From Dicyema japonicum (Eukaryota > Animalia > Dicyemida), in NCBI GenBank assembly GCA_011109175.1, contig RDEW01000013.1, forward strand, positions 910,181 through 974,180: DNA of 64,000 bases, read 5' to 3'. A model generated the notes under the pieces. The model made no database searches. It had not been told where the DNA came from and saw only the letters and a list, made by a program, of their open reading frames with translations. The translations under genes were made by a program, and so were the position numbers. Positions 3,815-45,980 of the stretch are shown piece after piece. Positions within the stretch are counted from its first letter, which is position 1, and each line of letters opens with the position of its first letter.

Positions 3815-5830
3815 CTATGACACTGCCTCGTCCCTACAAAGAATACTCCCCAAAAGTATCCAGCGAAGTAATATCACATTCTCACCTAGATGACTACTAA
3901 TATCGGCTCTCGTTCCTGAGCTGTATAGAAGGATCGGTTGCACGAACGCATAAATAGACTTATCCTGAGATAATTTGGGGAACATAATTATCATTGCAAG
4001 GGACATCAGCATTTTTCGATTAGCCATGTCCTTGTGATCTCCAGAAGCGAGCCGAGAATTTTGACGAACCTCCACTTTTCATCAACCCGCTTAGGTATCC
4101 GTTCAATCGACGTCAGCTCAGTTTTTTTTAATTGATTTCAATGACAATCCATCACAAATATCTATGACTTTATCCTCAGCTGAATTAGGTAACTCCAAAG
4201 GCACTTGTTAGGTAACCCAATTCTTTACGAATGTCCCTCAAAGACCCGTCTTGAATGCTTCTCTTCATCCAAAATCAATAATCTTATTCAGTCTTAGTCA
4301 ATAACCTGAGAACAAGCAGTGGTTATTTCTACAAGTAAACTCCCAGAATGTACATCATTTTTTCAACTCCCAACTCCCAGAATGACTAAAAAATAGTTAT
4401 TCAATACACGAACCATTGATGGTTCCAAACGATATCACCGGTTGACCTTCCTTGGTTAAGTCCACTTTGACGGAGCGATAAATAGTTATAATAGATAAGG
4501 ATTTTTGTAGACACGTTTGTAGAATTACGGCCTCAGATAAATGTGTGTGCCTCACTTTTGGGAGTAGGAAAAAAGTCAAACGGAAAATGGTCAAATTTTA
4601 ATTTGGAAAAAAAGTCAAATTATTATTTCTTGGTCATTTTCAAATAAAATAAGATTTTAAAGACTTTATTTGTTTACAAAAAAATTTTCAAGAAAAATTT
4701 GCATTTGATTTTTTTCCGTTTTTCCTATTTTCTTCTGCTAATTTTACGAAAGATGGAAAAAAGTAAAAAAATTTAAGTCATGTTTATATTTTTGTAAAAG
4801 TCAATTTTTTTTAATTTCCAAAATTAAAATCACTCAAACCGCAACCTTGGTAAAATTGATTCTACTTTGAACTTTAAAATTTGACCTGCTAGTTGCGTAG
4901 CGTGCTTAAAAATAAAACTATTTTTACGTTGAATATTTATTTTTCTATGAAACTTATAAAATCGAATAAACGTGGATCAAAAAATTTTTTTCAATGGATA
5001 TATACTAGAAATTCCGGAACTAAATAGAAAATATACTGAAAATGTATTTTAAAAATTTCTAAAAAGAAGAAGTTTAATAACAGATCTTGAGTTTCAAAAT
5101 GCTACTGAAAGTCAACCTCATAATTATCCTTTTGACTTTCATGGAATCAGATTGAGCAAATTGACAAATGAATTTAAACTTCCGGCATATCATTACAATG
5201 AAACACCATCCCAAATTTTCTCTGAATATTTAGCACAATGCGATCCGAACTTAAACAATTATGTCCTTCTGATTCGTTTAGAAAAACAATCCGTAAGCAA
5301 CGCTCGTCTAATTGCGGTTAAAATTACATCATGGGGTTTAATTTTTGATTTTATATCGTGGTTAAACCAAATTCATTTTTTTAAAGTTTTGGGTGAAATT
5401 AAAATTGACTTTTTTCCAAAAAATATAAACATGGCTTAAAATTTTTGACTTTCCCCCATTTTTCGTACAATTAGCAGAAGAAAATGGGAAAACGAAAAAA
5501 AAGTGAACGGAAAAAAAGTCAAATGCAATTTTTTTTGAATTTTTTTGTTAAAAATAAAGTCTTTAAAGTCTTATTTTACTTGAAAATAATTAAGAAATGA
5601 TGATTTGATTTTTTTTCCTTTTGACTTTTTTCTACTTCCCTCACTTTTACCAGGTTTTTGTAGACAGTAATATATATTTCCCGTTGAGATTTCAAATAGA
5701 CAGTGAATCTTAAATATTTCGGTAAACATAATTTTTTGGCATTCTTCACAAATATTGTAAAGCCAGCCACTCGATTATTATTCGAACTCCAAAAATTTAT
5801 GAATCCGCGAACAGTTTATTAAGTAAGCAG
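3815..5830 (-). mobile_element. Degraded RTE-like LINE RT region, split by a MULE insertion
   Basis: Minus-strand remnants YAFVQPILLYSSGT, GRSTGDIVWNHQW and CLQKPGK. The LQKPGKSE segment joins across the 4560-5639 insertion. Confidence 0.65.
4560..5639. mobile_element. Non-autonomous Mutator-like element (MULE) with long TIRs
   Basis: Imperfect inverted repeats of about 270-300 bp (4560-~4830 versus ~5385-5639), starting GGGAGTAGGAAAAAAGTCAAA and ending TTTGACTTTTTTCTACTTCC. 9-bp direct duplication CTCACTTTT at 4551-4559 and 5640-5648. Internal ORF remnant FKLPAYHYNETPSQIF resembles a MULE transposase. Confidence 0.85.
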
Positions 5831-6298: not shown

Positions 6299-7219
6299 TT
6301 TTACGATTAGTTAAAATTAACTGTTCTTTACTTAAATGAAGAGTGTATCCTGCCTATGCGGAGCTATATATGGCTCTCGTGAAAACCGAAAAAATTAATA
6401 TTATGGCTCTCGTGAAAAACCGAAAAAAATTTTTTCTAATATTCACTTAAAATTTCACTTTCAAACATCATTTACTTTTTTGCCAAATAAAATATTTTAA
6501 TGTCATTTATTACTTTATAATCTTTAATCGAATTATGAAACGAATTAATGCGTTTAGTGTGACATAATTAATATTTCAAAATTTTATTAGGAAATGAGAG
6601 TAAACGTTATATATCTTCCCTGACTGCGTGCTACTTCCTCTCAGGATGCGAGCGAGATTCGCTCAAATAACCCAGCAGCGCAGAGGTTTCCTGTTCGTTA
6701 GCGATCCGATTGCTGATACATTATCCACAATGTCGTTTACAAGTCTTTAATTGGCTATTATGAAGTTCCACCCACATCAATTGCAAGGACGATGCTGTCA
6801 CTTGTCTAACCTTCAAGCTTCGGAATAGGCAGACTGGAAGTAAGGATGGGCATTTTAGCGGACTACACAAACAAATAATCCGATTCAAAAAATTGTTTTT
6901 TTAAACATTAATAATTAATTTTTGTATATATTAACTAAGGGAAGATTCTAAGAACACGGTAACAACAAACTAACTAATCACGTGGTCAACCACGCTCTAA
7001 GAGACTCATTTTGGGCCGACGTTCCTCCTCAACTCCATACAAACACGTATCGGCCGTATAACCGGATCTCCTAGTGAACAGGAACAGCCTCGGTTTCTCC
7101 TGATTAGGGATTCCAGAAACACTAAAGAGGAGATTTTAACAGAAGTTCATCACTCCGTAATTTTAAAAGCCCCATTTTCTGGCTAACTTAGATGTTCAAA
7201 GAGTTTCCAGGAAATAAAT

Positions 7220-7320
7220 GAGATAAATGCATATTAATCATATTCTCATGAATGGAGATAATGCATATTAATCATATTCTCATGAATGGAGATAAATGCA
7301 TATTGATCTTATTCTCATTA
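7220..7320. repeat. Short tandem repeat, about 34-bp unit x3
   Basis: GAGATAAATGCATATTAATCATATTCTCATGAATG repeated three times. Confidence 0.85.
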
Positions 7321-7893
7321 TGAGGTTGTGATTTATTTTAGGCATGCTATTGGAGCATTTGCTGAATATAAATTGATAAAACGTTCAGGAATTATTGACT
7401 AAATATCTACAGGAGGTGGGGTATGTCTCACACGAATCAAGAGCTATATTTGACCCGCATGTGCAGCAAAAAAATAAGAGAGTCAGCTTCTTCATGCTTT
7501 TAGGTTTAGAAATTAAAGTTAGGCAGCTTGAATGGCATGCTGTTTCCTGACGATAGCTATCGAGACACGCTCTCGAAGGCATCCAGTCCTCACGTGAATC
7601 CTTAGTGACTCTATGGATCAATAGTCGATCCAACGGACTAGAGGTTAGTTTGTGGGCCAACTCTAATTAGAAATAATGACTGATCCGAGGGATTAAATTT
7701 ATTTTAATAAGTTTTACTATTGGAAGTAAGAAAAAATCAGTGCTCCTCAGTTAACACAAAATCCAGTGAAACCTACACTGCTTATTTATGATTTACGACT
7801 CCTGGAAGATCTATTAAGGCTAAGGTGAACCTGAATGATTAAAATAGAGTTATTCAGCATTTCTAAATGATATTATGGGATTAGAGTAATACA

Positions 7894-7909
7894 CGGATTT
7901 TATAATGCG
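7894..7909 (+). promoter_or_regulatory. Putative TATA-containing core promoter motif of micro-exon gene 1
   Basis: CGGATTTTATAATGCG, 15/16 identical to 13926-13941 upstream of the paralog; about 45 nt before the ATG. Confidence 0.55.
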
Positions 7910-7952
7910 CGAATGAAGTAGTATTTAAATTAATCGAGAAATTATCGTTAGA

Positions 7953-9631
7953 ATGGCAATGGCTTGTTTCCTTTTGTTTTTTATAATAAACTTCGGTAAT
8001 TTTTTTTGTAACTAGATATTGGATTTGGATTTTCAATGGGGGTATCCACATGAAATAATAAAATTTTAGTTTCCTAACCCAAATTCTGCTCAAAGTAAAT
8101 TTTGTTAAATACCTTTAGATCAAAATGGAGGAATCGGCGGTATTTCAATGAATATTAAATTTTAAAGGTCCTAACATCCATAATGGCCCACGTAAACTTA
8201 ATTATTTTATTTTTAGAATCCAGCGGAGGATCCAGTGGTATTTCAATGAATTTTAAATTTTAAAGGTCCTAACATCCATAATGGCCCACGTAAACTTTAT
8301 TATTTTATTTTTAGAATCCAGCGGAGGATCCAGTGGTATTTCAATGAATTTTACATTTTAAAGGTCCTAACATCCATAATGGCCCACGTAAACTTAATTA
8401 TTTTATTTTTAGAATCCAGCGGAGGATCCAGTGGTATTTCATTGAATTTTAAATTTTAAAGGTGCTAACATCCATAATGGCCCACGTAAACTTAATTATT
8501 TTATTTTTAGAATCCAGCGGAGGATCCAGTGGTATTTCAATGAATTTTAAATTTTAAAGGTCCTAACATCCATAATGGCCCACGTAAACTTAATTATTTT
8601 ATTTTTAGAATCCAACGGAGGATCCAGTGGTATTTCAATGAATTTTAAATTTTAAAGGTGCTAACATCCAAAATGGCCCACGTAAACTTAATTATTTTAT
8701 TTTTAGAATCCAGCGGAGGATCCAGTGGTATTTCAGTGAATATTAAATTTTAAAGGTGCTAACATCCAAAATAACCCACGTAAACTTAATTATATTATTT
8801 TTAGATTCCAGCGAAGGATCCATTGGTACTTCAATAAATATAAATTTTTAGGAGGATTTACGGTATTTCCGCATCAAACAATAAATATTTAGACTACTGG
8901 AACTACCCAGGCTAGAAGCAGCCGAACCACCCAACGTAAATTAATTAAATAATCTTTTTAGGAACCAGCAGAACATCCGGTTGTATTCTATGAATATTAA
9001 ATTTTAGGACAATATACGGTATTAAAGCATCAAAAAATAAATATTTAGACTGCAATTACCCAAGGTACTACCAACCAAGCCACCCAATGTAAACTTAATT
9101 AAATAATTTTTAGCTGCAGAATACAGTGGTATTTCTATGCATATTACATTTCAAAGGTAGTACTTACATACCTCCCCCGCGTAAGCATAATTAAATAATT
9201 TTTAGCTCCAGGATACGGTGGTATTTCCATGCATATTAAATTTTAAAGGTGGTCATGGGTCAGGTCCTTCAAGTAAGCCTAATTCAATAATTTTTAGATT
9301 ATGGTGTAACAGCAAGTAGTTTTTTATGAATTTTATTTTTTAGAATCTAAAAATCCATTTTCATTTATGCGTTCTGATTTATCAGGTTTTATTATTATTT
9401 TTTTAATTCCACTAAATTATAAGCCTGTAATCATTAGATCCTGATAATGATGAAAAAAATCCAAAAAATTGGAAATCTCTGATTTTTAGTAATTTTGTGT
9501 CCAAATTAGATAATTTTAATTATGGTTTAGTATCTTGTATCATCGGTGTGGTGGTTCTACCAGTCTACTTGAATTACAGAAAATTTAATAAAGAAACAAA
9601 AAAATCAGAATCGAAACCTGGAAATAAGTAA
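7953..9631 (+). CDS. Micro-exon gene 1: predicted 294-aa type-I membrane protein with Gly/Ser/Asn/Pro repeats (30 exons)
   Basis: Manual GT-AG splicing gives one uninterrupted 885-nt ORF. Exons: 7953-7995, 8016-8041, 8070-8094, 8119-8139, then 7x(24-nt + 21-nt) from 8168 with a 98-bp period, then 11,43,18,11,40,15,24,15,24,18,42 nt, last exon 9438-9631. Protein: MAMACFLLFFIINFDIGFG-FSMGFPNPNSAQNQNGGIG-(GPNIHNGPQSSGGSS)x7 with variants-GGFTTTGTTQARSSRTTQ...PKNWKSLIFSNFVSKLDNFNYGLVSCIIGVVVLPVYLNYRKFNKETKKSESKPGNK*. AATAAA at 9637-9642. Confidence 0.88.
8140..8825 (+). repeat. 98-bp tandem repeat x7 (28-nt intron + 24-nt exon + 25-nt intron + 21-nt exon)
   Basis: Units start at exact 98-bp spacing (24-nt exons at 8168, 8266, 8364, 8462, 8560, 8658, 8756) with no indels. 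Confidence 0.95.
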
Positions 9632-12600
9632 TTTATAATAAATGTTTAAAGAGATTCATTTTATGAGTATGGCAACTATTACAACAATTCCTAACAGTAG
9701 AATTATGCAGTCTAGTAATTAGTTTAACTTTCTTTTTTGGTAATTAACAATTTCTTTATTTTTTTATTATAATTATAAGAAATTTAAAATTCTGATTTAT
9801 TTAATTTTTTAGTAATTTACGTATTCTCGCTTTGGTGTTGTTGGTCGAACTTTCCTCTGCGAGAGTTCACGCTATTTATTCGTTTGGTTTAAGATTTCCT
9901 CTGTAGAACATTTATATCGCAGAAGAAAAAAATTATATCCCCCTCGAGAAGACGAGAAGAGTAGCATTATGGATAACACTTAACAAAAGCCTTAGAAATG
10001 AATTGGACAACAAGCGGGAGAAACTTTTTATGCCCATTCGCTGGATAGTGGAGGACGGATCGATTTTTCAAAAGAATTCAAAGATTCAGGACTTTGAAAG
10101 ATTCTGAGAAAATAATGAGGAGAGAGTCCGTTTCTAGTGTCCAAGACAGTTCTCTCAAAAAATTAAGAAGACATTTTCTAGATACGATAAGATAGTTACG
10201 GACCACTCAAAGAGACTGGAAATTACTAAAAGCTGGGATCACCTGTTTAGTTGGTAATGACTCTAAGAGATTTATGACCTCTCTGCACTCTCGGCTGTAC
10301 ATTTGATAGCAATCGGCCTTCTATATGTTAGTGAAGTCGAGTTAACTAACTAGACTTGATAATATGCATGTGCATAACACGCGCTTTTTAAGAGCAAATA
10401 ACAGTCACTTTAACTAACTGAAAACCTAATCTTAATTTATGAGTTTGGAAAATTAGTCTACGAGGCCATAGATACCTAGAAGCGCATGGTCTTTGGTAGA
10501 TCTACTAAGTTTGAGGATTCTCTTCCATGTTCTCACCTGGATGAGACTGTTTTTCTCCAGCCACTGTGAAAACCTAAACTGATTTATAACCCCCAATGTC
10601 ATTTGGAAGGCTAATTGAGAACATTTTCATACTAATTGTAAAAAAGGAATTCGCTCTCATCGCTAGATCCTTATTATTATTAATAGTAATGTCCGCGGAA
10701 CCAAAAAAATAAATTAATTTGAGGTTCCACCTTTGCCATGCATCTCAGGATACGCGGTGTAAGTCGTTTCCATCCTCCTCTGTTTCTCGCAACCGCCCTC
10801 GTATTGCTGGAGCCTGACAAATGGAAATATATTTCTAATAAATCATGTTAGTAATTTAAAAAAATACATTAGTCATTTTTCTAAGGACCTTTGAATATTA
10901 TAATTTTCCTTTACAGAAATATAACTGATCTTTTCAGAATCTTCAAAATTGTTCACTATGTTTTTTATTCGATTAGATTTTGGAATAAAAAAAGTGACGC
11001 AGTAAGAAACTCCCCCATCGTGTGAGAATTACAACTGGAGGAAGTTTAATCTCATCCAACATAGCTCTGTGTCAAAAATCAATCAAAATGATCATTGCGA
11101 GCATAATCTACGTTGAGTTAACTCTCTTGATGGCAACAGAGATCAACTGGAGGAGCCACTGAGTCTCGTCGTTGATAATTAAATAGAATTGTTTGTTTAA
11201 AAATTTGAGAGGTCTCAATATTTTTTGGCATTCTGTCTGATGTTTTTTTCCATTAAAAAATTGATCGATGTAATGTTGTTTAGATGATTTTACTATCTTA
11301 TAGCATTTTGGAAAAATAATCCTCCTTTAGGTGTTCGTGTAAATATGTATGAGTTTCTAGAAAATACTTTTGAAATTCGTTCCTTTTTTTGCCTCTGAGA
11401 TCTAATCGTTTTAATAAATGAGAAAATACAAGCCTGGTATTAAATGAAGACTGCTAATTTAAAAAAATTAAAATTAATTCCAAAGACCACTGTTAAACCG
11501 AAAAAACTAAGTGATCGAATTGAATCATGGCTCTCATCTTTGCTCGATGTTGATTCCTTGAGCCTAAAAATTCGCAATTCCTTTTTGGCATTGGTGTCCT
11601 TTTTTGTTTTTGTTTTTTTACACAACAAAATCAATTTAAAACGTGTATTTAAAAAAAAAGACAAATAAAAAATTGTAAATAAATTAAAAAAATAATTAAA
11701 ATAATTATATCCCAAATAGGACAATTCCCGCCCTAATAATAACTAAATAATATTGTCCCTGATTTTCCCTCATATATCTGTTCTTTACATAAATAAAGCG
11801 TGTCTCTGCTGAGCGGACTTCTAGCAAATATGTATCTGCGTATAAGTGCAGAGAATTAATTATATCAGGTCATAATGAAATATCTAAAAATAAACTGACG
11901 TTGTTAATTCAAATATAATTTTAATGGATAAAGAAGTCTTTGACAAAATCCAAAATGCGATTACGCCGTGATTCAGAGACCCTCGCAAATGGAGATGTTT
12001 TTAGCGCAACGGGATAACTGTCTTGTGGCATCTGGGGCAAAATCAGTCAAAATTGAAACAACACTAGGTTTCTAGAATAGGATGGTTGCCGATCTTCGAT
12101 TTTCCTAGGAGGCTTTTTGTTAGATTTGTCCTCACATTTTGTTAGTACATTTTCAAAATGCAGCAAAAACACGGTTACCCCCATAATATTTGGAATTTGC
12201 TGATTGAAATCGAGTTTTCACCTTCCCAACCTTTTCTCTGATGTGATAGACTTTTCTAGATGCTATTTTGTCGCAGATAAGAGAACAAAATAACCATCAA
12301 AATTCATTTTGAACGATGGAATTTAGGTTTTTTGTTTTTATTATTTAGAGACTGAAATTCCATATTTTGGATTAAAACACACGTGTTTCGAAAATGTATC
12401 TATCCAAATTTGCAATCCTCTTCTTTTACTTAGTCCACCAAGTTCTTTCAGCATTCCTCAGTCTAGGGTTGACTGCTAAGCATGTCGTTGCACGTGTGAG
12501 TCACGAATAGCTAACAGGATTCCATCACGTCTTCTGGGCCGATTCGACGCTAGTGCGCTTCAGTGATGCCCAGCGATAAGGCTGCTTAGTTAATATTCAG

Positions 12601-13995: not shown

Positions 13996-16900
13996 ATGAA
14001 AGTGGGCATCTACATAATTATATTCTTGATAAACATGGGTAATGTTGAGATAAGACTTAGAAATCGGATATGGATTTCCTTCAAATGTATTTAGAGAAAT
14101 AATAAATGTATAGATTAATGGAATGGGTGGTCATGGAATGCTACAGAATGCACAAAGTATAACTTAAAGATAATCTTTAGATGGATTTGGAAATGGTAGA
14201 ATTTTGAGAGAATTATTTTTTAGGAGGATCAACGGTAATTTAAAAAATAAAAACATAGACGAGTACACATGTCCAAACTACTCCACCTAACGCTGGACAA
14301 AGTAAATCTTAAACATAATTTATAGATGGGGGAGGAAATGGTAGAATTATTAGAGAATTATTTTTAGGAGGATCAACGGTAATTTAAAAAATAAAAACAT
14401 AGACGAGTACACATGGCCAAACTACTCCAACTAACGCTGGACAAAGTAAATCTTAAACATAATTTATAGATGGGGGAGGGAATGGTAGAATTTTTAGAGA
14501 ATTATTTTTTAGGAGGATCAACGGTAATTTAAAAAATAAAACATAGACGAGTACACATGGCCAAACTACTCCAACTAACGCTGGACAAAGTATATCTTAA
14601 ACATAATTTATAGATGGGGGAGGAAATGGTAGAATTATTAAAAAATTATTTTTTAGGAGGATCAACGGTAATTTAAAAAATAAAAACATAGACGAGTACA
14701 CATGGCCAAACTACTCCCCCTAACTCTGGACAAAGTATATCTTAAAACATAATTCTTAGATGGGAGGAAATGGTAGAATTTTAGAGAATTATTTTTTAGG
14801 AGGATCAACGGTAATTTAAAAATAAAAACATAGACGAGTACACATGCCAAACTACTCCTTAACGCTGGACAAAGTATATTTTAAAATAATTTATAGATGG
14901 AGGAAATGGTAGAATTTGAAGAATTATTTTTTAGGAGGATCAACGGTAATTTAAAAATAAAAAACATAGACGAGTACATGGCCAAACTACTCCCTAACTC
15001 TGGACAAAGTAATATCTTAAAATAATTCTTAGATGGATTTGGAAATGGTAGAATTTTAGAAATTATTTTTTAGAGGATCAACGGTAATTTTAAAAAAAAA
15101 ACATAGACGAGTACGCATGGCCAAAAACTACTCCCTTTAACTCTGGACAAGTATATCTTAAAAATAATTTTAGATGGATTTGGAAATGGTAGAATTTTGA
15201 AGAATTATTTTTTAGGAGGATCAACGGTAATTTAAAAAATAAAAATATAGACGAGTACTCAGGGCCAATCTACTTCCTTTAACTCTGGACAAAGTATATC
15301 TTAAAATTAATTCTTAGATGGGGACATGGTAGAATTTTGAAAAATTATTTTTTAGGAGGATCAACGGTAATTTAAAAAAATAAACATAGACGAGTACGCA
15401 TGGCCAAACTACTCCTTTAACTCTGGACAAAGTATATTTAAAAATAATTTTTAGATGGAGGAAATGGTAGAATTTTGAGAATTATCTTTTAGGAGGATCA
15501 ACGGTAATTTAAAATAAAAACATAGACGAGTACGCAGGCCAAACTACTCCCTTTAACTCTGGACAAAGTATATTAAAAATAATTCTTAGATGGATTTGGA
15601 AATGGTAGAATTTTGGAGAATTATTTTTTAGGAGGATCAACGGTAATTTAAAAAAAAAACATAGACGAGTACGCAGGGCCAAACTACTCCCTTTAACTCT
15701 GGACAAAGTATATTTAAAAATAATTCTTAGATGGATTTGGAAATGGTAGAATTTTGAAAATTAATTTTTTAGGAGGATCAACGGTAATTTAAAAAATAAA
15801 ACATAGACGAGTACGCAGGGCCAAACTACTCCCTTTAACTCTGGACAAAGTATATTTAAAAATAATTCTTAGATGGATTTGGAAATGGTAGAATTTTGAA
15901 AAATTATTTTTTAGGAGGATCAACGGTAATTTAAAAATAAAAAACGAGTACGAGCAGGCCAAACTACTCCCTTTAACTCTGGACAAAGTATATTTAAAAA
16001 AATTCTTAGATGGATTTGGAAATGGTAGAATTTTGAAAAATTATTTTTTAGGAGGATCAACGGTAATTTAAAAATAAAAACATAGACGAGTACTCAGGGC
16101 CAATCTACTCCCTTTAACACTGGACAAAGTATATCTTAAAAATAAATCTTAGATCCATTTGTACATGGTAGAATTTTGAAAGAATTATTTTTTAGGAGGA
16201 TCAACGGTAATTTAAAAAATAAAACATAGACGAGTACTCAGGGCCAATCTACTTCGTTTAACTCTGGACAAAGTATATCTTAAAAATAATTTTAGATGAA
16301 TTTGGAAATGGTAGAATTTTGAAAGAATTATTTTTTAGAAGGATCAACGGTAATTTAAAAAATAAAAATAGACGAGTACGCAGGGCCAAACTACTCCTTT
16401 AACTCTGCACAAAGTATATTTTAAAAATAATTCTTAGATCAATTTGGACATGGTAGAATTTTGATAAAATTATCTTTTAGTAGAATCAACGGTAATTTAA
16501 AATAAACACATAGACGAGTACGCAAGGCCAAACTACTCCCTTTAACTCTGCACACAGTATATTTAAAAAATTCTTAGATCCATTTGGACATGGTAGAATT
16601 TTGAAAAATTATTTTTTAGGAGATCAACGGTAATTTAAAAAATAAAAAATAGACGAGTACGCAGGCCAAACTACTCCCTTTAACTCTGCACAGTATATTT
16701 AAAAATAATTTTTAGATCCATTTGGACATGGTAGAATTTTGAAAATTATTTTTAGGAGGATCAACGGTAATTTAAAAAATAAAAATAGACGAGTACGCAG
16801 GCCAAACTACTCCCTTTAACTCTGCAAAAGTATATTTAAAAATAATTCTTAGATCCATTCGGACTGGTAGAATTTTGAAAAATTATCTTTTAGGAGAATC

Positions 16901-18303
16901 AACGGTAATTTAAAAAATAAATAGACGAGTACGCATGGCCAAACTACTCCCTTTAACTCTGGACAAAGTATATTTAAAAATATTCTTAGATGGATTTGAA
17001 TGGTAGAATTTTAAAAATTATTTTTTAGGAGGATCAACGGTAATTTAAAAAATAAAACATAGACGAGTACTCAGGGCCAAACTACTCCCTTTAACACTGG
17101 ACAAAGTATATCTTAAAAATAATTTTAGATATTTGGAATGGTAGAATTTTGAGAAATTATTTTTTAGGAGGATCAACGGTAATTTAAAAAATAAAAACAT
17201 AGACGAGTACTCAGGGCCAAACAACTCCTTTAACTCTGGACAAAGTATACTTAAAATAATTTTAGATCCATTTGGACAATGGTAGAATTTTTGAGAAAAT
17301 TATTTTTAGAAGGATCAACGGTAATTTAAAAAATAAAAACATAGACGAGTACTCAGGGCCAAACTCTTCTCTTTAACTCTGCACAAAGTATATCTTAAAA
17401 ATAATTTTTAGATGGATTTGGACTTGGTAGAATTTTTGAGATAATTATTTTTTAGGAGGATCAACGGTAATTTAAAAAATAAAAAAATAGACAAGTACTC
17501 ATGACCAAACTACTCTTTTTTACTCTGGACAAAGTATAATTTAAAAATTATTTTTAGATGGATTTGGAAATGGTACTTTTTTGAAATAATTATTTTTAGG
17601 TGGAACAACGGTTATTTAAAAAATAAAAACATAGACGAGTAAACATGGCCAAACTCCTCCGCCAAACGCTGCATCAAGTATTCATTAGATTTTATTTTTA
17701 GATGAAGGAGGACATGGTATAATTTTTTCAACAATTAATTTTAGATAGTATCACTGTATTTCCTTCTTATAATTATAATAAATATTTAGACTGTCTTATA
17801 TTCATCAACTGGAACTCATCATACGACCAAAGTTTTTATTTTATAACATAAATTAGATTCTGTTTCAACATCATGTAATATTTTAAATTTTAAATTCTTT
17901 TTTTAGACGGATCTTCTGTATTTTTTTATTTTTCATTTATTTAGACTAATGGAAAATTTTCAGATTTTTATAACCCTTTTGCCCAAAGTAGATTTTTTCA
18001 AATTATTTATTAGATTCAGCTAAGGGATCATCTAGTATTCTGAATTAAAATTTTTTAGGTCCATCGATTAATCTAGATTCTACTCTTTCTGGTTTATTTA
18101 TTATTTTTTAATTTTTCTAAATTCAATGTTGTTTATCAATAGTTACTCCATATAATGGATTCATTCCACAAAATTGGAAAGAATATTTTTATAGTAATCT
18201 TTATCAACTAAACATAGATCACTTCAATTCTGTTTTGGTTCTTTTTATTTTATGTACCCTGGTTTTGACTATCTATCGAAACAATACCCGAAGTAAACGA
18301 TAG
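13996..18303 (+). CDS. Micro-exon gene 2: mucin-like type-I membrane protein, about 87 exons, about 730 aa if in frame; paralog of gene 1. Frame-breaking 1-2 nt deletions occur in several repeat units.
   Basis: Exons 13996-14038 (43 nt), 14061-14086 (26), 14114-14156 (43), then 25 units of 15+11+43-nt exons encoding NGFGN-GGST-TSTQGQTTPFNSGQ and variants, eight divergent micro-exons, last exon 18143-18303. N-terminus MKVGIYIIIFLINMEIGYG-FPSN. C-terminus IPQNWKEYFYSNLYQLNIDHFNSVLVLFILCTLVLTIYRNNTRSKR*. Confidence 0.8.
14157..17716 (+). repeat. About 141-bp tandem repeat x25 (three micro-exons plus three 24-29 nt introns per unit)
   Basis: GATCAACGGTAAT or a close variant recurs 25 times between about 14227 and about 17603. 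Each unit has three GT...AG AT-rich segments. Confidence 0.95.
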
Positions 18304-18449
18304 ACTTAAATTAACCCTTAATGTTTAACTAAATTTCTTTTTCAGAGGTTATTAACTTTTCTTTAACTTTTGATGCGATCATCATGATTTAAAATAATTT
18401 AAATTTTCCTGTTATTAAGCAAAATAATTAAATCAACATAATAAAAATA

Positions 18450-36693: not shown

Positions 36694-37985
36694 TTAGTTA
36701 AGAGCTCTTTCGCGTGGCCCTAAAAGGGGTTCGCTTGAGCCATGTTTTGCAGCCATCCTCCTCGCCCACGCCATCTTGTTCCTGACCCTCATTCGAACAT
36801 CATCCAGATCGTCCGGTGTCATCAATTTACGACTGTTTTGTTTGTAGTCATCTTTTAAGCAGGTTGGAAGTGTGTTTCTTGGTCTGCCTCGAAATCCGCG
36901 ACTTCTGGCGTAGTAGAAATATTCTTCCATTATTCTGTTACTTGGCGTAGTCGGGTCCAGTCTGAGGATATGTCCAAATAGTCGCCATCTCGATAAAATA
37001 ACATCGGTGCTGAGTGGTCTGGATTTACATCGTGAATATAGATTTTCATTTGAGATTTTTCTCGGCCAAAAAATTCCAATCAACATGCGGAGTTGGCTCC
37101 TGTGAAAAGTATCTAGCTTCTCTAAATCAATTTTAGAACATGCCCATGTTCCAGTATTGTATAGCAAAATTGGTTTAACAAACGTGTCGTATAGTCTGAC
37201 ACGAAGTTTCTGTGATACATCTTTTTTCCTTATCCAAATTAGGTACATTTTTTGAAATATATGGTAGCCAGCATTTTCCTTCGACAAATATCCTCAGCAT
37301 CACCTAGCAGTGAGCCGAGTTTTTTGGTATGTCTCCAGCACTCATCGTTCTTTGATTCTGCTCGTTCGACTCGTGTATATTCAGTTTTTTTAATGTTTAT
37401 GCGCAAATCCCAATTCTTAAAAATACGTTCGGCTTGAAGTAAAATTTGGTCAAGTATTTCTTGGTCGGTAGACACAAAGTCTACATCATCCGGATAAATT
37501 AACTCTGTTATGTCCCAGTATTTAGGACCCATGACATTTCTCAATTCCTTGAGCGCAGCTTCGAGGTAAACAATAAATATAATTGGGGACAAAGAATCTC
37601 CTTGTGGAGTGCCCATGTTGGTACTGAAACACTTCGAATGCTTTGTTCCTATTCTCACGGATAGGTCAGTTTCGGAAAGTAATAAACTTATTAGTCTCAG
37701 GCAGTCCTCGTCAAGCAGTTCCTTTAGAACAATCATGAGTTTTTCTCTATTGATGCTGTTAAAAGCCTTCGTTAGATCAATTCCTAGGATGTAGATTACT
37801 TTCGTGTATTTTTGACATATTGATGTGAGCCATCGATGACTCCATACAATATCTGAGGTTGATCTTCCACTTCTAGACCCACTTTGACTTAGGGAAAGGT
37901 ATTTTTCCACTGGCTCTCGTATACGGTTAAGCACTATGATCGATAAGGTTTTCCTGCATCCTTTGATATTGGAACGGACAAACAA
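36694..37985 (-). mobile_element. 5'-truncated RTE-like LINE, RT domain, one frameshift
   Basis: ORFs 37239-37985 and 36694-37287: GIDLTKAFNSINR, GTPQGDSLSP, YPDDVD, KKLGSLLGD, RWRLFGHILR, FRGRPR. Confidence 0.92.
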
Positions 37986-43049: not shown

Positions 43050-45980
43050 AAACCCTTTCAATCTTTTTGGTTCTCCCCACCGTCCGGTGTCCTTTCATCT
43101 CCTGTGTCTTCGACCCTGTCTGGTGTCCCCATTTATCCAGACTTTTGATTCTTCTATGTGGAGACGTCGAAACCAATCCTGGTCCATGGATAGGTTTTAC
43201 AATTATACAACTGAATACGAATGGGGTCAGGAAGTAAATCTTTGAACTCCGGGCACTTCTCCGCGAAAATGAGGCTGACCTCGCTTTAATACAGGAGTCC
43301 AAGCTATCTCCCTCCATACCAACACCCTCTTTTCCCGGATACACAGTGATCCGTAAAGATCGTCAGGGAAAACGCGGAGGAGGACTACTTACTATTATAA
43401 AGAACGATTTTCTTTTATGGATACAACTCAACAAACCTCAGAGCTTCTTGGCTCCGACAAGACTTTGGAGCAGATTACTGTCAAAATGGAGTTATTCCCG
43501 TTCTTTTGGATCCATTTAGCTAATTTATATATTCCTCCACAAGGATCGTGTCCGTCATCTTACACCCCTGATTTATCACGCATTTCAACGTTGAAAAATC
43601 TACTGTTATGTGGGGATCTTAATGCACGACATCCAGTTTGGCTCACTTCCCAATTATTTGATAACCGAGGAGAACTCATTGCAAATTATCTTCCTGACCT
43701 GATTATACTGAACAACCCTAACTCACATACGAGAACCCCATTAAGGATGACTGATAGCTGCACATCCCCCGACTTAACACTATGCTCACCTTCTCTGGCT
43801 GGACTCATTTCCTGGAACGTCTTTTACGGCTTCTCCAGTGACCACAATCCAATCCTTCTAAAATTGAGAGGTCTTCGACGATACAGGAGACGGCGGCGAA
43901 ATCAAAAAGATTCAAGGATTATACGAAGGTTGACTGGTCTGGTTTCAGTAACCTTGTGGATAAATTCTTGGCCGGAGATTATCCTCCCAATACGCTCTAT
44001 TGACGAGGCCGCAGAAATTATCAGCGCTGCCATTCAGAAAGCTGACCATATTTTTATTCCTATATCGTCATACAAGAAGTTTATTCCTACCCTCAGCTCT
44101 TATACAATAAGTCTTATAAAACAAAGAGACCGGCTGAAGAGATGCCATCTGTTGGACATGAAGTCTTTGACAGCCCTCAGACAACTGAATAAAAGATCTG
44201 TCAGAGCATAAAAGAACACAAGGACAAGAGATGGCAGCATCTAGTTAACCACCTCGACAGGAAAAGTACATCCCGACATCTTCTGGAAAACTCTTAAACA
44301 AGTCAAGTCGGAGCTGGATGATGCAGACGGAACCGGAAAGTCTTCTCCTGAACACTTATGCCACCTACATCCTAACATCCTTATGAAACATTACGCTGGA
44401 ATTAGCTTCAAACCATTCTCGAAACACCTGGACATTAAGGTGCGTGCCCATAAACCGAAGAAGGAACCTTATCACGAACTATTCACAGATGACCAAGTCT
44501 TGGATGTGATCACCAGATTAAAGAGCTCACGGGCGTGCGGGCCTGACAAAGTATCTTCTATTCACCTAAAACACCTAAGCCACTACGCAATTGGCTACCT
44601 CACGCATATATACAATCTGTCCATTAACTATAATATTATTCCTAAGATTTGGAAGAATTCTATCATCAGACCGATATTGAAGGCTGGGAAACCAGAGACA
44701 GAACCTGCATCCTACAGGCCTATTTCCGTTACCAGCACACTGTCAAAAATTATGGAGAAACTTGTATTATCAGTCATTATTCCGTATCTTCCGCGTCCTA
44801 TATTTCAACATGGTTTCCTCCGCGGTAGGTCCACCGCTACATACTTGGCAACTTTATCGCAGTTCATTGCCGACGGTTTTAACACCCATCCTCCGCCTCA
44901 CAAACGCACAATCTTGGTTTCTATTGACATCAACAAAGCCTTTGACACTGTTTCGAGGAAAATCTTGGTTGGAAAAATATTTTCTACTAATATTCGTCCG
45001 AATGTGAAATTATGGCTGGCCAACTTTTTGTCTGGAAGACGTGGAAGAGTAGTCAGTGGTGATCTCAGATCTAGATCACGATTACTACCGAACGGGGTAC
45101 CCCAGGGGTCTCCACTTTCACCAATTCTATTCAACCTTTTCCTACACGACCTACCTAATGATGGAGACGAAGATTCCCTGTTATTATCCTACGCAGACGA
45201 CGTAGTCATTGCAATACGGAACCGCTCGACGCAAGTCGCATCCCTTAAAACTCAGACAAAATTGAACATTCTCCACGATTGGATTGTGGCAATCGACTTA
45301 ACGATTTCTGCAACCAAGTCTATCTGTTCCACATTCACGTCGGACCGTCGTTCCAAGGATGAACCGAGTCTTTATTGGTCCCACTAGGATTCCAGTGACA
45401 AAGTCCCCCATTGTCCTTGGAGTCAAGTACGACAGCCTTCTCAAATTCAACTCCCACGCAACAGACATGATCACCAGGGGCCTCCAGAAAGTTAACGTTA
45501 TACGCGCCCTTGTTCGGAGGACCACGAGGAACATGGACTTTTCCGTTTCTACACCTACCAACAAACAATCGCGCCTGCCATTGAGTATGCCTCCGTTGCA
45601 TGGAGATTCGGGCTATCGGAGTCTTTGGTCCAAAGAATCAACTCGATATACCGGAAAACAATCAGTATGCTTTCCCACGTAATGGATCAACAGTCGACTC
45701 ACTACTCATGGAAGCTAAGATCCGTAGTCGTGGCTCCGGATTTTTTGGCGTCTGTGAGGAAGATGGAAATCCGCTTCGCCTGATCCTTTCCATGGCAAGA
45801 GAAAACCGATTGGATAAGAAATTCCCCTCCCCGATCGGATTCCTCTGCAAGACCGAGAGAAGGCTCTTCCGGAAAGTAATGGGGACGATGGAGATCACAG
45901 ACGTCGAATGGCACAATGATTGCAAGGACTGGGATCACCTAACTGTATGACTCTTTTGTCTTTCTTTCTCGGTGTTCCAA
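43050..45980 (+). mobile_element. Near full-length Ingi/Vingi-like LINE (2A-like peptide, APE endonuclease, RT; no ORF1 seen), frameshifted
   Basis: LLILLCGDVETNPGP, IIQLNTNG, LIQESKL, LLCGDLNARH, SSDHNPI, SYRPIS, QHGFL, DINKAFDTV, GVPQGSPLSP, YADD in ORFs 43417-44211 and 44383-45387. Confidence 0.9.

Follow-up and report, generated by a model that had tools for sequence, protein, structure and literature searches.

Organisation of the locus

The sequence analysed here, referred to below as the window, is a 64,000-nt (64-kb) stretch of contig RDEW01000013.1 from the assembly of Dicyema japonicum, a dicyemid that parasitises octopus renal sacs (67,542,437 bases in 377 pieces, the figures given in PMC6736024). 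Between positions 7953 and 9631 of its plus strand, AT-rich stretches bounded by GT and AG alternate with GC-richer stretches, and once 29 GT-AG introns are removed the remaining 30 exons give 885 nt encoding 294 amino acids with no internal stop. The intron/exon parse runs continuously from an ATG exon with a signal-peptide-like leader to an exon with a predicted transmembrane (TM) helix, ending in a TAA at 9629-9631; it had been proposed in a preliminary description of this DNA and all 29 introns were rederived. Introns are 20-30 nt long in 28 of 29 cases, the last being 52 nt, and their GC content is 16.5% (83.5% AT) against 51% for the internal exons. The donor is GTA in 27 of the 29 and GTT in the other two. 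All 58 splice dinucleotides are intact and none of the 30 exons is frameshifted. Retention of any single intron leads to an early stop, each of the three introns with a length divisible by three containing one. As was pointed out earlier, a list of open reading frames (ORFs) misses the gene, there being no ORF of at least 100 residues that overlaps 7953-9631.

Upstream, at 7896-7929, lies a box (TATAAT-GCG-like, followed by TATTTAAA) that was recognised by eye ahead of all three members of the gene family described below and is a candidate core promoter. A 34-bp tandem repeat of 2.9 copies occupies 7220-7318, about 630 bp upstream of the ATG. Exons 1-3 (7953-8094; 43, 26 and 25 nt, with introns of 20 and 28 nt) carry the ATG and the hydrophobic leader, and exon 4 (8119-8139; 21 nt, phase 1) is a diverged relative of the 21-nt exon of the array that follows it. 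The array itself, defined by TRF, the parse and shuffling, comprises exons 5-18 in seven 98-bp units (8140-8825). Exons 19-23 (8852-9088) encode a Thr/Ser-rich stalk and represent two copies of an older 156-bp module (TRF period 156) with three exons of about 21, 11 and 43 or 40 nt; among them is intron 21 (8980-9007), which has two possible donors, at 8980 and 8983. Exons 24-29 (9114-9385; 15, 24, 15, 24, 18 and 42 nt, all phase 1) are Pro/Gly/Tyr-rich and contain an older 92-bp duplication detected by TRF. The terminal exon 30 (9438-9631; 194 nt), which lies behind the 52-nt intron, was established from its translation, its hydropathy and homologous exons in both paralogues. The box and the exons are all on the plus strand, as is the AATAAA at 9637-9642, which is present as had been claimed but is a weak candidate for a polyadenylation signal in DNA so rich in AT. 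Symmetric phase-1 exons are found throughout the array and make up 22 of the 28 internal exons, any of which could be skipped in frame; outside the array, however, sets of 26+25, 11+43 and 11+40 nt preserve the frame only as pairs.

TRF places the 98-bp repeat at 8139-8848 with 7.3 copies and 95% matches, and it agrees with the parse on the composition already given in the preliminary description: a 28-nt GT..AG intron, a 24-nt exon, a 25-nt GT..AG intron and a 21-nt exon, phase 1 throughout, encoding a 15-residue Gly/Ser/Asn/Pro/Gln repeat. Among the exons of these seven young units there are eight variants in 45 nt, affecting seven codons, all of them missense and none synonymous. The count of differences that are missense only and free of indels was thus reproduced, but the introns vary about as much (six variants in 53 nt), likewise without indels, so that it is no proof of coding constraint and was dropped as coding evidence.

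In the source sample the last array unit (8734-8859) is present in two sequence forms, with contigs of comparable depth. The second form, found in Illumina contigs, differs by I>Q, Q>L, N>D and H>Q and by a 1-nt intron insertion, and is probably an allele since it continues directly into exon 19. Summed contig depth over 8140-8825 is well above seven units' worth, although contig depth does not give copy number, and the array may have been collapsed in the assembly. Across the gene the source-sample contigs carry 20 substitutions and three indels, with all three indels intronic, no splice dinucleotide touched and no stop created; the numbers are low and none is significant by itself. A search of public sequencing runs found the locus in four DNA-type runs of one sample and no RNA run among them. 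These runs date from 2019 and contain Nextera junction sequence, in keeping with the mate-pair libraries of PMC6736024; their contigs over the locus are of unspliced DNA, with adaptor from mate-pair libraries at the ends and no junctions between exons.

Under strict rules (GTA donor, AT-rich, stop-free) a two-intron parse of the unit was obtained in one of 3000 dinucleotide shuffles and nine of 3000 block shuffles (P = 0.0003-0.003), whereas loose rules allowed one in 9-14% of shuffled units. An end-to-end, frame-aware search from ATG to stop, with scoring tuned on the 30-exon gene, recovered all of the 29 introns, predicted one more, a spurious one, inside the AT-rich last exon, and found a stop-free path in none of three reverse-strand frames and none of 12 block shuffles. 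When a frame-blind version was applied to the neighbouring repeat at 14152-17660 it yielded a paralogue with 87 exons, composed of 15+11+43-nt modules (69 nt). With a free start the search built long stop-free spliced frames on either strand at other loci of the genome, so that GT-AG borders and the lack of a stop are on their own weak evidence. There was no Rfam match within the 64-kb window.

The donor of intron 21 requires separate consideration. In a gap-free alignment with its sister exons, exon 21 is 21 nt long and its last base is 8982; the donor next to it (8983) is GTAT, and cutting there gives 888 nt with an in-frame TGA at codon 169. The earlier claim of a stop-free 885-nt product therefore holds only with the donor at 8980 (GTTG), 3 nt further upstream. 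The stop-making base at 8982 is no assembly error, for it is also read in Illumina contigs from the source sample. Use of the shifted donor is plausible: each sister exon has a GT in frame 3 nt upstream, donors of the GTT type are present at homologous sites elsewhere in the family, and the nine downstream exons are intact.

A family of three genes

Searches with the terminal exon revealed two relatives on the same scaffold, one at 18143-18304 in the window (E 0.011) and the other on the minus strand some 270 kb distant (E 1e-4), and reciprocal searches with the paralogues' terminal exons support the relationship of the three genes. What is new here is a family with common ends, namely exons 1 and 2 at the start and the last intron and TM exon at the finish, and with different arrays between them. 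All three begin with a 43-nt exon 1, an intron of 20-22 nt and a 26-nt exon 2, with an I-N-x-x-I-G-(F/Y)-G motif spanning the first junction, and at the other end the last intron is always 50-52 nt and the terminal exon encodes a hydrophobic stretch with a basic tail. A pattern for the junction motif matched the three family loci only in the genome, which bounds the size of the family and nothing else as the pattern was drawn from these loci. The number of small exons in the middle is 26 in the 30-exon gene, about 83 in paralogue 2 and two in paralogue 3.

Paralogue 2 (13996-18304, plus strand; frame-blind parse) has 87 exons, with the same leader and TM exon and 25 copies of the 15+11+43-nt module, each a 144-bp unit with three exons. 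Exon alignment showed the 156-bp module of exons 19-23 to be homologous to this unit, the 11- and 43-nt exons amplified 25 times in paralogue 2 being present twice in the 30-exon gene. As assembled paralogue 2 is frameshifted; 21 of its exons depart from the expected length, 19 being too short, and almost all lie in the centre of the array. A further 57 array exons are of full length and contain no stop. The off-length exons have mostly lost 1-4 nt in homopolymers, as expected of long-read gap filling, and so look like long-read error. Outside the array, exon 81 (17790-17831) has also lost 1 nt, and one unit near 15945 lacks its normal acceptor.

Paralogue 3 (about 645700-646170 of the scaffold, minus strand; positions 4700-5170 of the excerpt analysed) is short and without an array, and keeps the upstream box, leader exons, last intron and TM exon. 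It was found through the TM exon alone, after which the leader exons and intron positions matched too. As assembled, its frame is broken by a single base at about three homopolymer runs, which marks either a pseudogene or assembly error. A sub-threshold Pfam match of TM type to this paralogue was dismissed. About 2 kb upstream of it there is a transposase-like frame (excerpt 7127-8986), judged by eye to be of Tc1/mariner type, with 21-bp tandem arrays on both sides. The window also contains ORFs for a LINE-like retrotransposon endonuclease and reverse transcriptase at 43417-45387 (plus strand) and 37239-37985 (minus strand), split into several frames.

Divergence of exons and introns

The two older duplications of the 30-exon gene (156 and 92 bp) show the introns to be better conserved than the exons, the exons differing by 37% and the intron interiors by 11% (Fisher p 9e-7). 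AT-biased neutral simulations calibrated on the introns gave exon differences of 12-17%, and the observed value was reached in none of 400 runs. In paralogue 2 the exons differ by 37% at codon positions 1-2 compared with 24% in the introns (p 0.003). This conservation of introns over exons in older internal duplicates is, like the family, among the new observations at this locus.

Within the two older duplicates third codon positions have changed in seven of 39 cases compared with 38 of 78 at the other positions, corresponding to a pN/pS of 2.7 (simulated p 0.005-0.015). Neither paralogue 2 nor two further pairs from the 30-exon gene repeated the signal, and a synonymous excess was found nowhere. 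Positive selection is accordingly not claimed for this unreplicated value, and its action on the exons is a lead only.

Predicted product

Hydropathy of the leader reaches 3.0 over 11 residues, and cleavage near residue 19 is likely. The only other hydrophobic segment lies at about residues 257-275 (9515-9571), with a 19-residue peak of 1.97, and is followed by a Lys-rich tail; its hydrophobic core is only about 16 residues long and contains a Pro. A signal-peptide-like leader and a putative TM segment with a basic tail, as described earlier, were thus recovered, but presence of the anchor in the product hinges on use of donor 8980 at intron 21. Cys is lacking from the ectodomain, 76% of which is Gly/Ser/Asn/Pro/Gln/Thr (27% Ser+Thr, 20% Gly), and its FoldIndex of -0.08 is an unfolded score, in keeping with the previous suggestion that the protein is probably of low complexity and disordered. 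The array contains Ser but no Thr, a mucin-like composition is confined to residues 148-200 (42% Ser+Thr) and the product has no N-glycan sequon. The terminal exon had no homologue in protein sets of 5.8 billion and 1.8 billion sequences, Pfam or the ESM Atlas; these searches covered the terminal exon, the others (14 residues or fewer) falling below the minimum query length.

Comparison with known systems

In dicyemid introns the median length is about 27 nt and the donor has shrunk to GTa (PMC6543705, PMC13644364, PMC2222250). The introns of the 30-exon gene resemble them in length, in the GTA donor, in the terminal AG and in AT content, and GTA donors with introns of less than 30 nt, being the published D. 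japonicum pattern, count in favour of a spliced gene. The micro-introns are therefore ordinary for dicyemids, and the earlier framing of them as a feature of this gene was abandoned. It is the micro-exons that are unusual, for the mean exon of D. japonicum is 198 nt (PMC6736024) whereas those of this gene are mostly 11-25 nt. The same genome study masked repeats before transcript mapping (PMC6736024), so that a gene of this kind could be missed.

An analogy with the micro-exon genes (MEGs) of schistosomes had been drawn, and criteria for it were taken from PMC4350168, PMC5825161 and PMC10526429. According to these studies about 75-80% of the coding sequence of MEGs is in symmetric exons of 6-36 nt, introns are 0.1-5 kb and variation arises by exon skipping. 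MEGs (MEG-1 to MEG-32) are like the 30-exon gene in having many exons of up to 36 nt, mostly symmetric, and a leader peptide; some are anchored and O-glycosylated and their mature region evolves rapidly. The likeness extends to the leader, which for the dicyemid product is judged by hydropathy only, as is secretion or anchoring, and to the mostly symmetric exons. It fails in that symmetric exons of no more than 36 nt account for only 51% of the coding sequence (59% when every internal exon within that limit is counted) and in that long introns are lacking, those of the dicyemid gene being 20-30 nt apart from the one of 52 nt. Its exons are moreover tandem copies, whereas in MEGs skipping has been demonstrated. 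A search with the terminal exon found no similarity to a MEG family.

The closest analogue is instead tandem duplication of exons together with introns, as in the polymorphic mucins of Schistosoma mansoni (SmPoMuc), whose repeat units of about 1 kb each carry a 27-nt exon with its introns and whose introns are more alike than the exons (PMC2576457). In both systems the protein repeats lie on small exons duplicated with their flanking introns, the introns of the repeats are more alike than the exons, and both form small families with long-array and short members. SmPoMuc alleles differ and its transcripts often carry stops born of splicing, as would arise here from donor 8983. The dicyemid repeat may likewise vary between individuals, to judge from the alternative sequence of the last unit seen among the contigs of a single sample, which give no array length. 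The SmPoMuc unit of about 1 kb contains a single 27-nt exon whereas the 98-bp unit described here contains two exons and two introns, and a TM exon follows the repeats, unlike in SmPoMuc. No sequence similarity was found, and with no homologue of the terminal exon and a unit of 98 bp the gene does not belong to the SmPoMuc family. The expression and host role of SmPoMuc are established whereas the 30-exon gene is known from sequence alone. As further parallels to SmPoMuc PMC2576457 cites Coccidioides SOWgp and the modular spider silk genes, which by description have exon+intron repeats, concerted evolution and introns more homogenised than exons, with larger units and in other lineages. Tb-MEG1 of the myxozoan Tetracapsuloides bryosalmonae, as cited in PMC7923790 and PMC8481699, is a surface-protein micro-exon gene in a reduced animal parasite of the host kidney, and is likened to the present gene by description only.

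Alternative explanations

The reading we favour, which we hold to be probable though by no means secure, is that the locus is a spliced dicyemid gene for a 294-residue type I membrane protein with a role in the surface coat, grown by duplication of exon-intron blocks. Against it may be set that no RNA run contains the locus although stage transcriptomes of D. japonicum exist (BioProject PRJNA496385, named in PMC6854800), that the terminal exon has no protein homologue, that both paralogues are frameshifted as assembled, that the homologous intron 21 donor yields a TGA, that the TM core is of about 16 residues with a Pro and that there is nowhere a synonymous excess. That the repeat is a non-coding minisatellite with a GT..AG pattern produced by chance is scarcely credible. 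The loose parses of shuffled units and the ease with which free starts yield stop-free spliced frames would allow it, but it is largely refuted by the strict shuffle probabilities, by the unique flanking exons that carry the same parse on to the leader and the TM exon, by the intron positions common to three paralogues and by the contrast in rate between exons and introns. Cutting of intron 21 at 8983 deserves more weight, though it too appears unlikely; the product would be a secreted 168-residue repeat protein without an anchor, the allele might be subject to nonsense-mediated decay, or both forms might be made via both donors. The gap-free alignment of this donor with those of the sister exons, its preferred GTA, the presence of the stop-making base in the Illumina data and the frequency of splice-born stops in SmPoMuc transcripts all fit such an outcome. 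It leaves unaccounted for, however, nine downstream exons and a TM exon that are still open and homologous to those of the paralogues, the in-frame GT 3 nt upstream in all sister exons and the GTT donors at homologous positions in the family, and skipping of exons 22-23 would also avoid the stop.

The finding of no RNA run with the locus is compatible with a once-spliced gene, now silent or decaying in a pseudogene family, whose array is kept by neutral slippage. The conditional stop in the 30-exon copy and the frameshifts in the other two point the same way, as do the neutral-like spread of array variants over codon positions and the LINE-like ORFs common nearby. Decay of this kind is nonetheless distinctly improbable given that all 58 splice dinucleotides have survived, that none of the 30 exons is frameshifted, that indels in the sample are confined to introns, and that the off-length exons of paralogue 2 are clustered centrally and mostly due to homopolymer losses, as from long-read gap filling. 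Lower still is the standing of a system like that of the schistosome MEGs, with regulated exon skipping as the main source of protein variety. Although most internal exons are symmetric and phase 1, the leader and anchor resemble those of some MEGs and the two older duplicates have a raised pN/pS (p about 0.01), the exons are near-identical, so that skipping would mainly change length, and three pairs of exons are asymmetric. Introns of 25 nt imply intron definition, in which failure would be expected to lead to retention and a stop, not to skipping, and the pN/pS signal is absent from paralogue 2 and two other pairs.

A model for the growth of the arrays

For a spliced membrane-protein gene, the reading preferred here, the product would consist of a cleaved leader, a probably disordered ectodomain of about 210 residues, a single TM helix and, behind it, a short basic tail, the ectodomain being made up of 15-residue Gly/Ser/Asn-rich repeats followed by a Thr/Ser-rich stalk that is likely to be O-glycosylated. 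With introns of about 25 nt and exons of about 20 nt an exon-intron-exon-intron block would occupy less than 100 bp, and the tiny introns thus bring such blocks down to the size of minisatellites. Unequal crossing-over or slippage could then copy whole spliceable modules, of which those with an exon sum divisible by three would keep the frame and survive, and a different module may have been amplified in each paralogue between fixed ends. Introns would stay alike either because splice signals fill most of their length or because conversion homogenises them, while the exon sequence drifts or diversifies. Splicing would most likely be constitutive, and variation would lie mainly in the DNA, in copy number and sequence. 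From its composition and the anatomy of the parasite (PMC6854800) a role in the coat or in attachment is suggested, most likely in a glycocalyx or adhesion coat covering the ciliated outer cells, which are exposed to octopus urine and the renal epithelium; placement of the product on this host-facing surface is itself our inference.

A more far-reaching proposal is that dicyemids use spliceable cassettes of less than 150 bp, each an exon with a micro-intron, throughout the genome to build and diversify coat proteins, with array length shifting by recombination, exons under positive selection, introns fixed and tandem donors such as those of intron 21 switching between secreted and anchored forms. 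This is speculative and, on balance, doubtful. Were it true, a large share of the genes would lie concealed within the 49% of the genome that is counted as repeat, and 29-86 introns at intervals of 11-24 nt would have to be removed by the spliceosome.

Significance

Precedents for both the architecture and the conservation of introns over exons are to be found in SmPoMuc. If the gene is spliced as modelled, with 25-nt introns between exons of 11-24 nt, it would be an extreme test of the spliceosome, and to our knowledge this spacing is near the smallest exon-intron period in animals. Repeat masking would then be hiding real genes in a genome reported to have only 5,012 genes and 49% repeats. 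We know of no molecular account of how dicyemids attach to the octopus kidney, and a spliced family of this kind would provide candidate surface proteins for a parasite that lives attached there.
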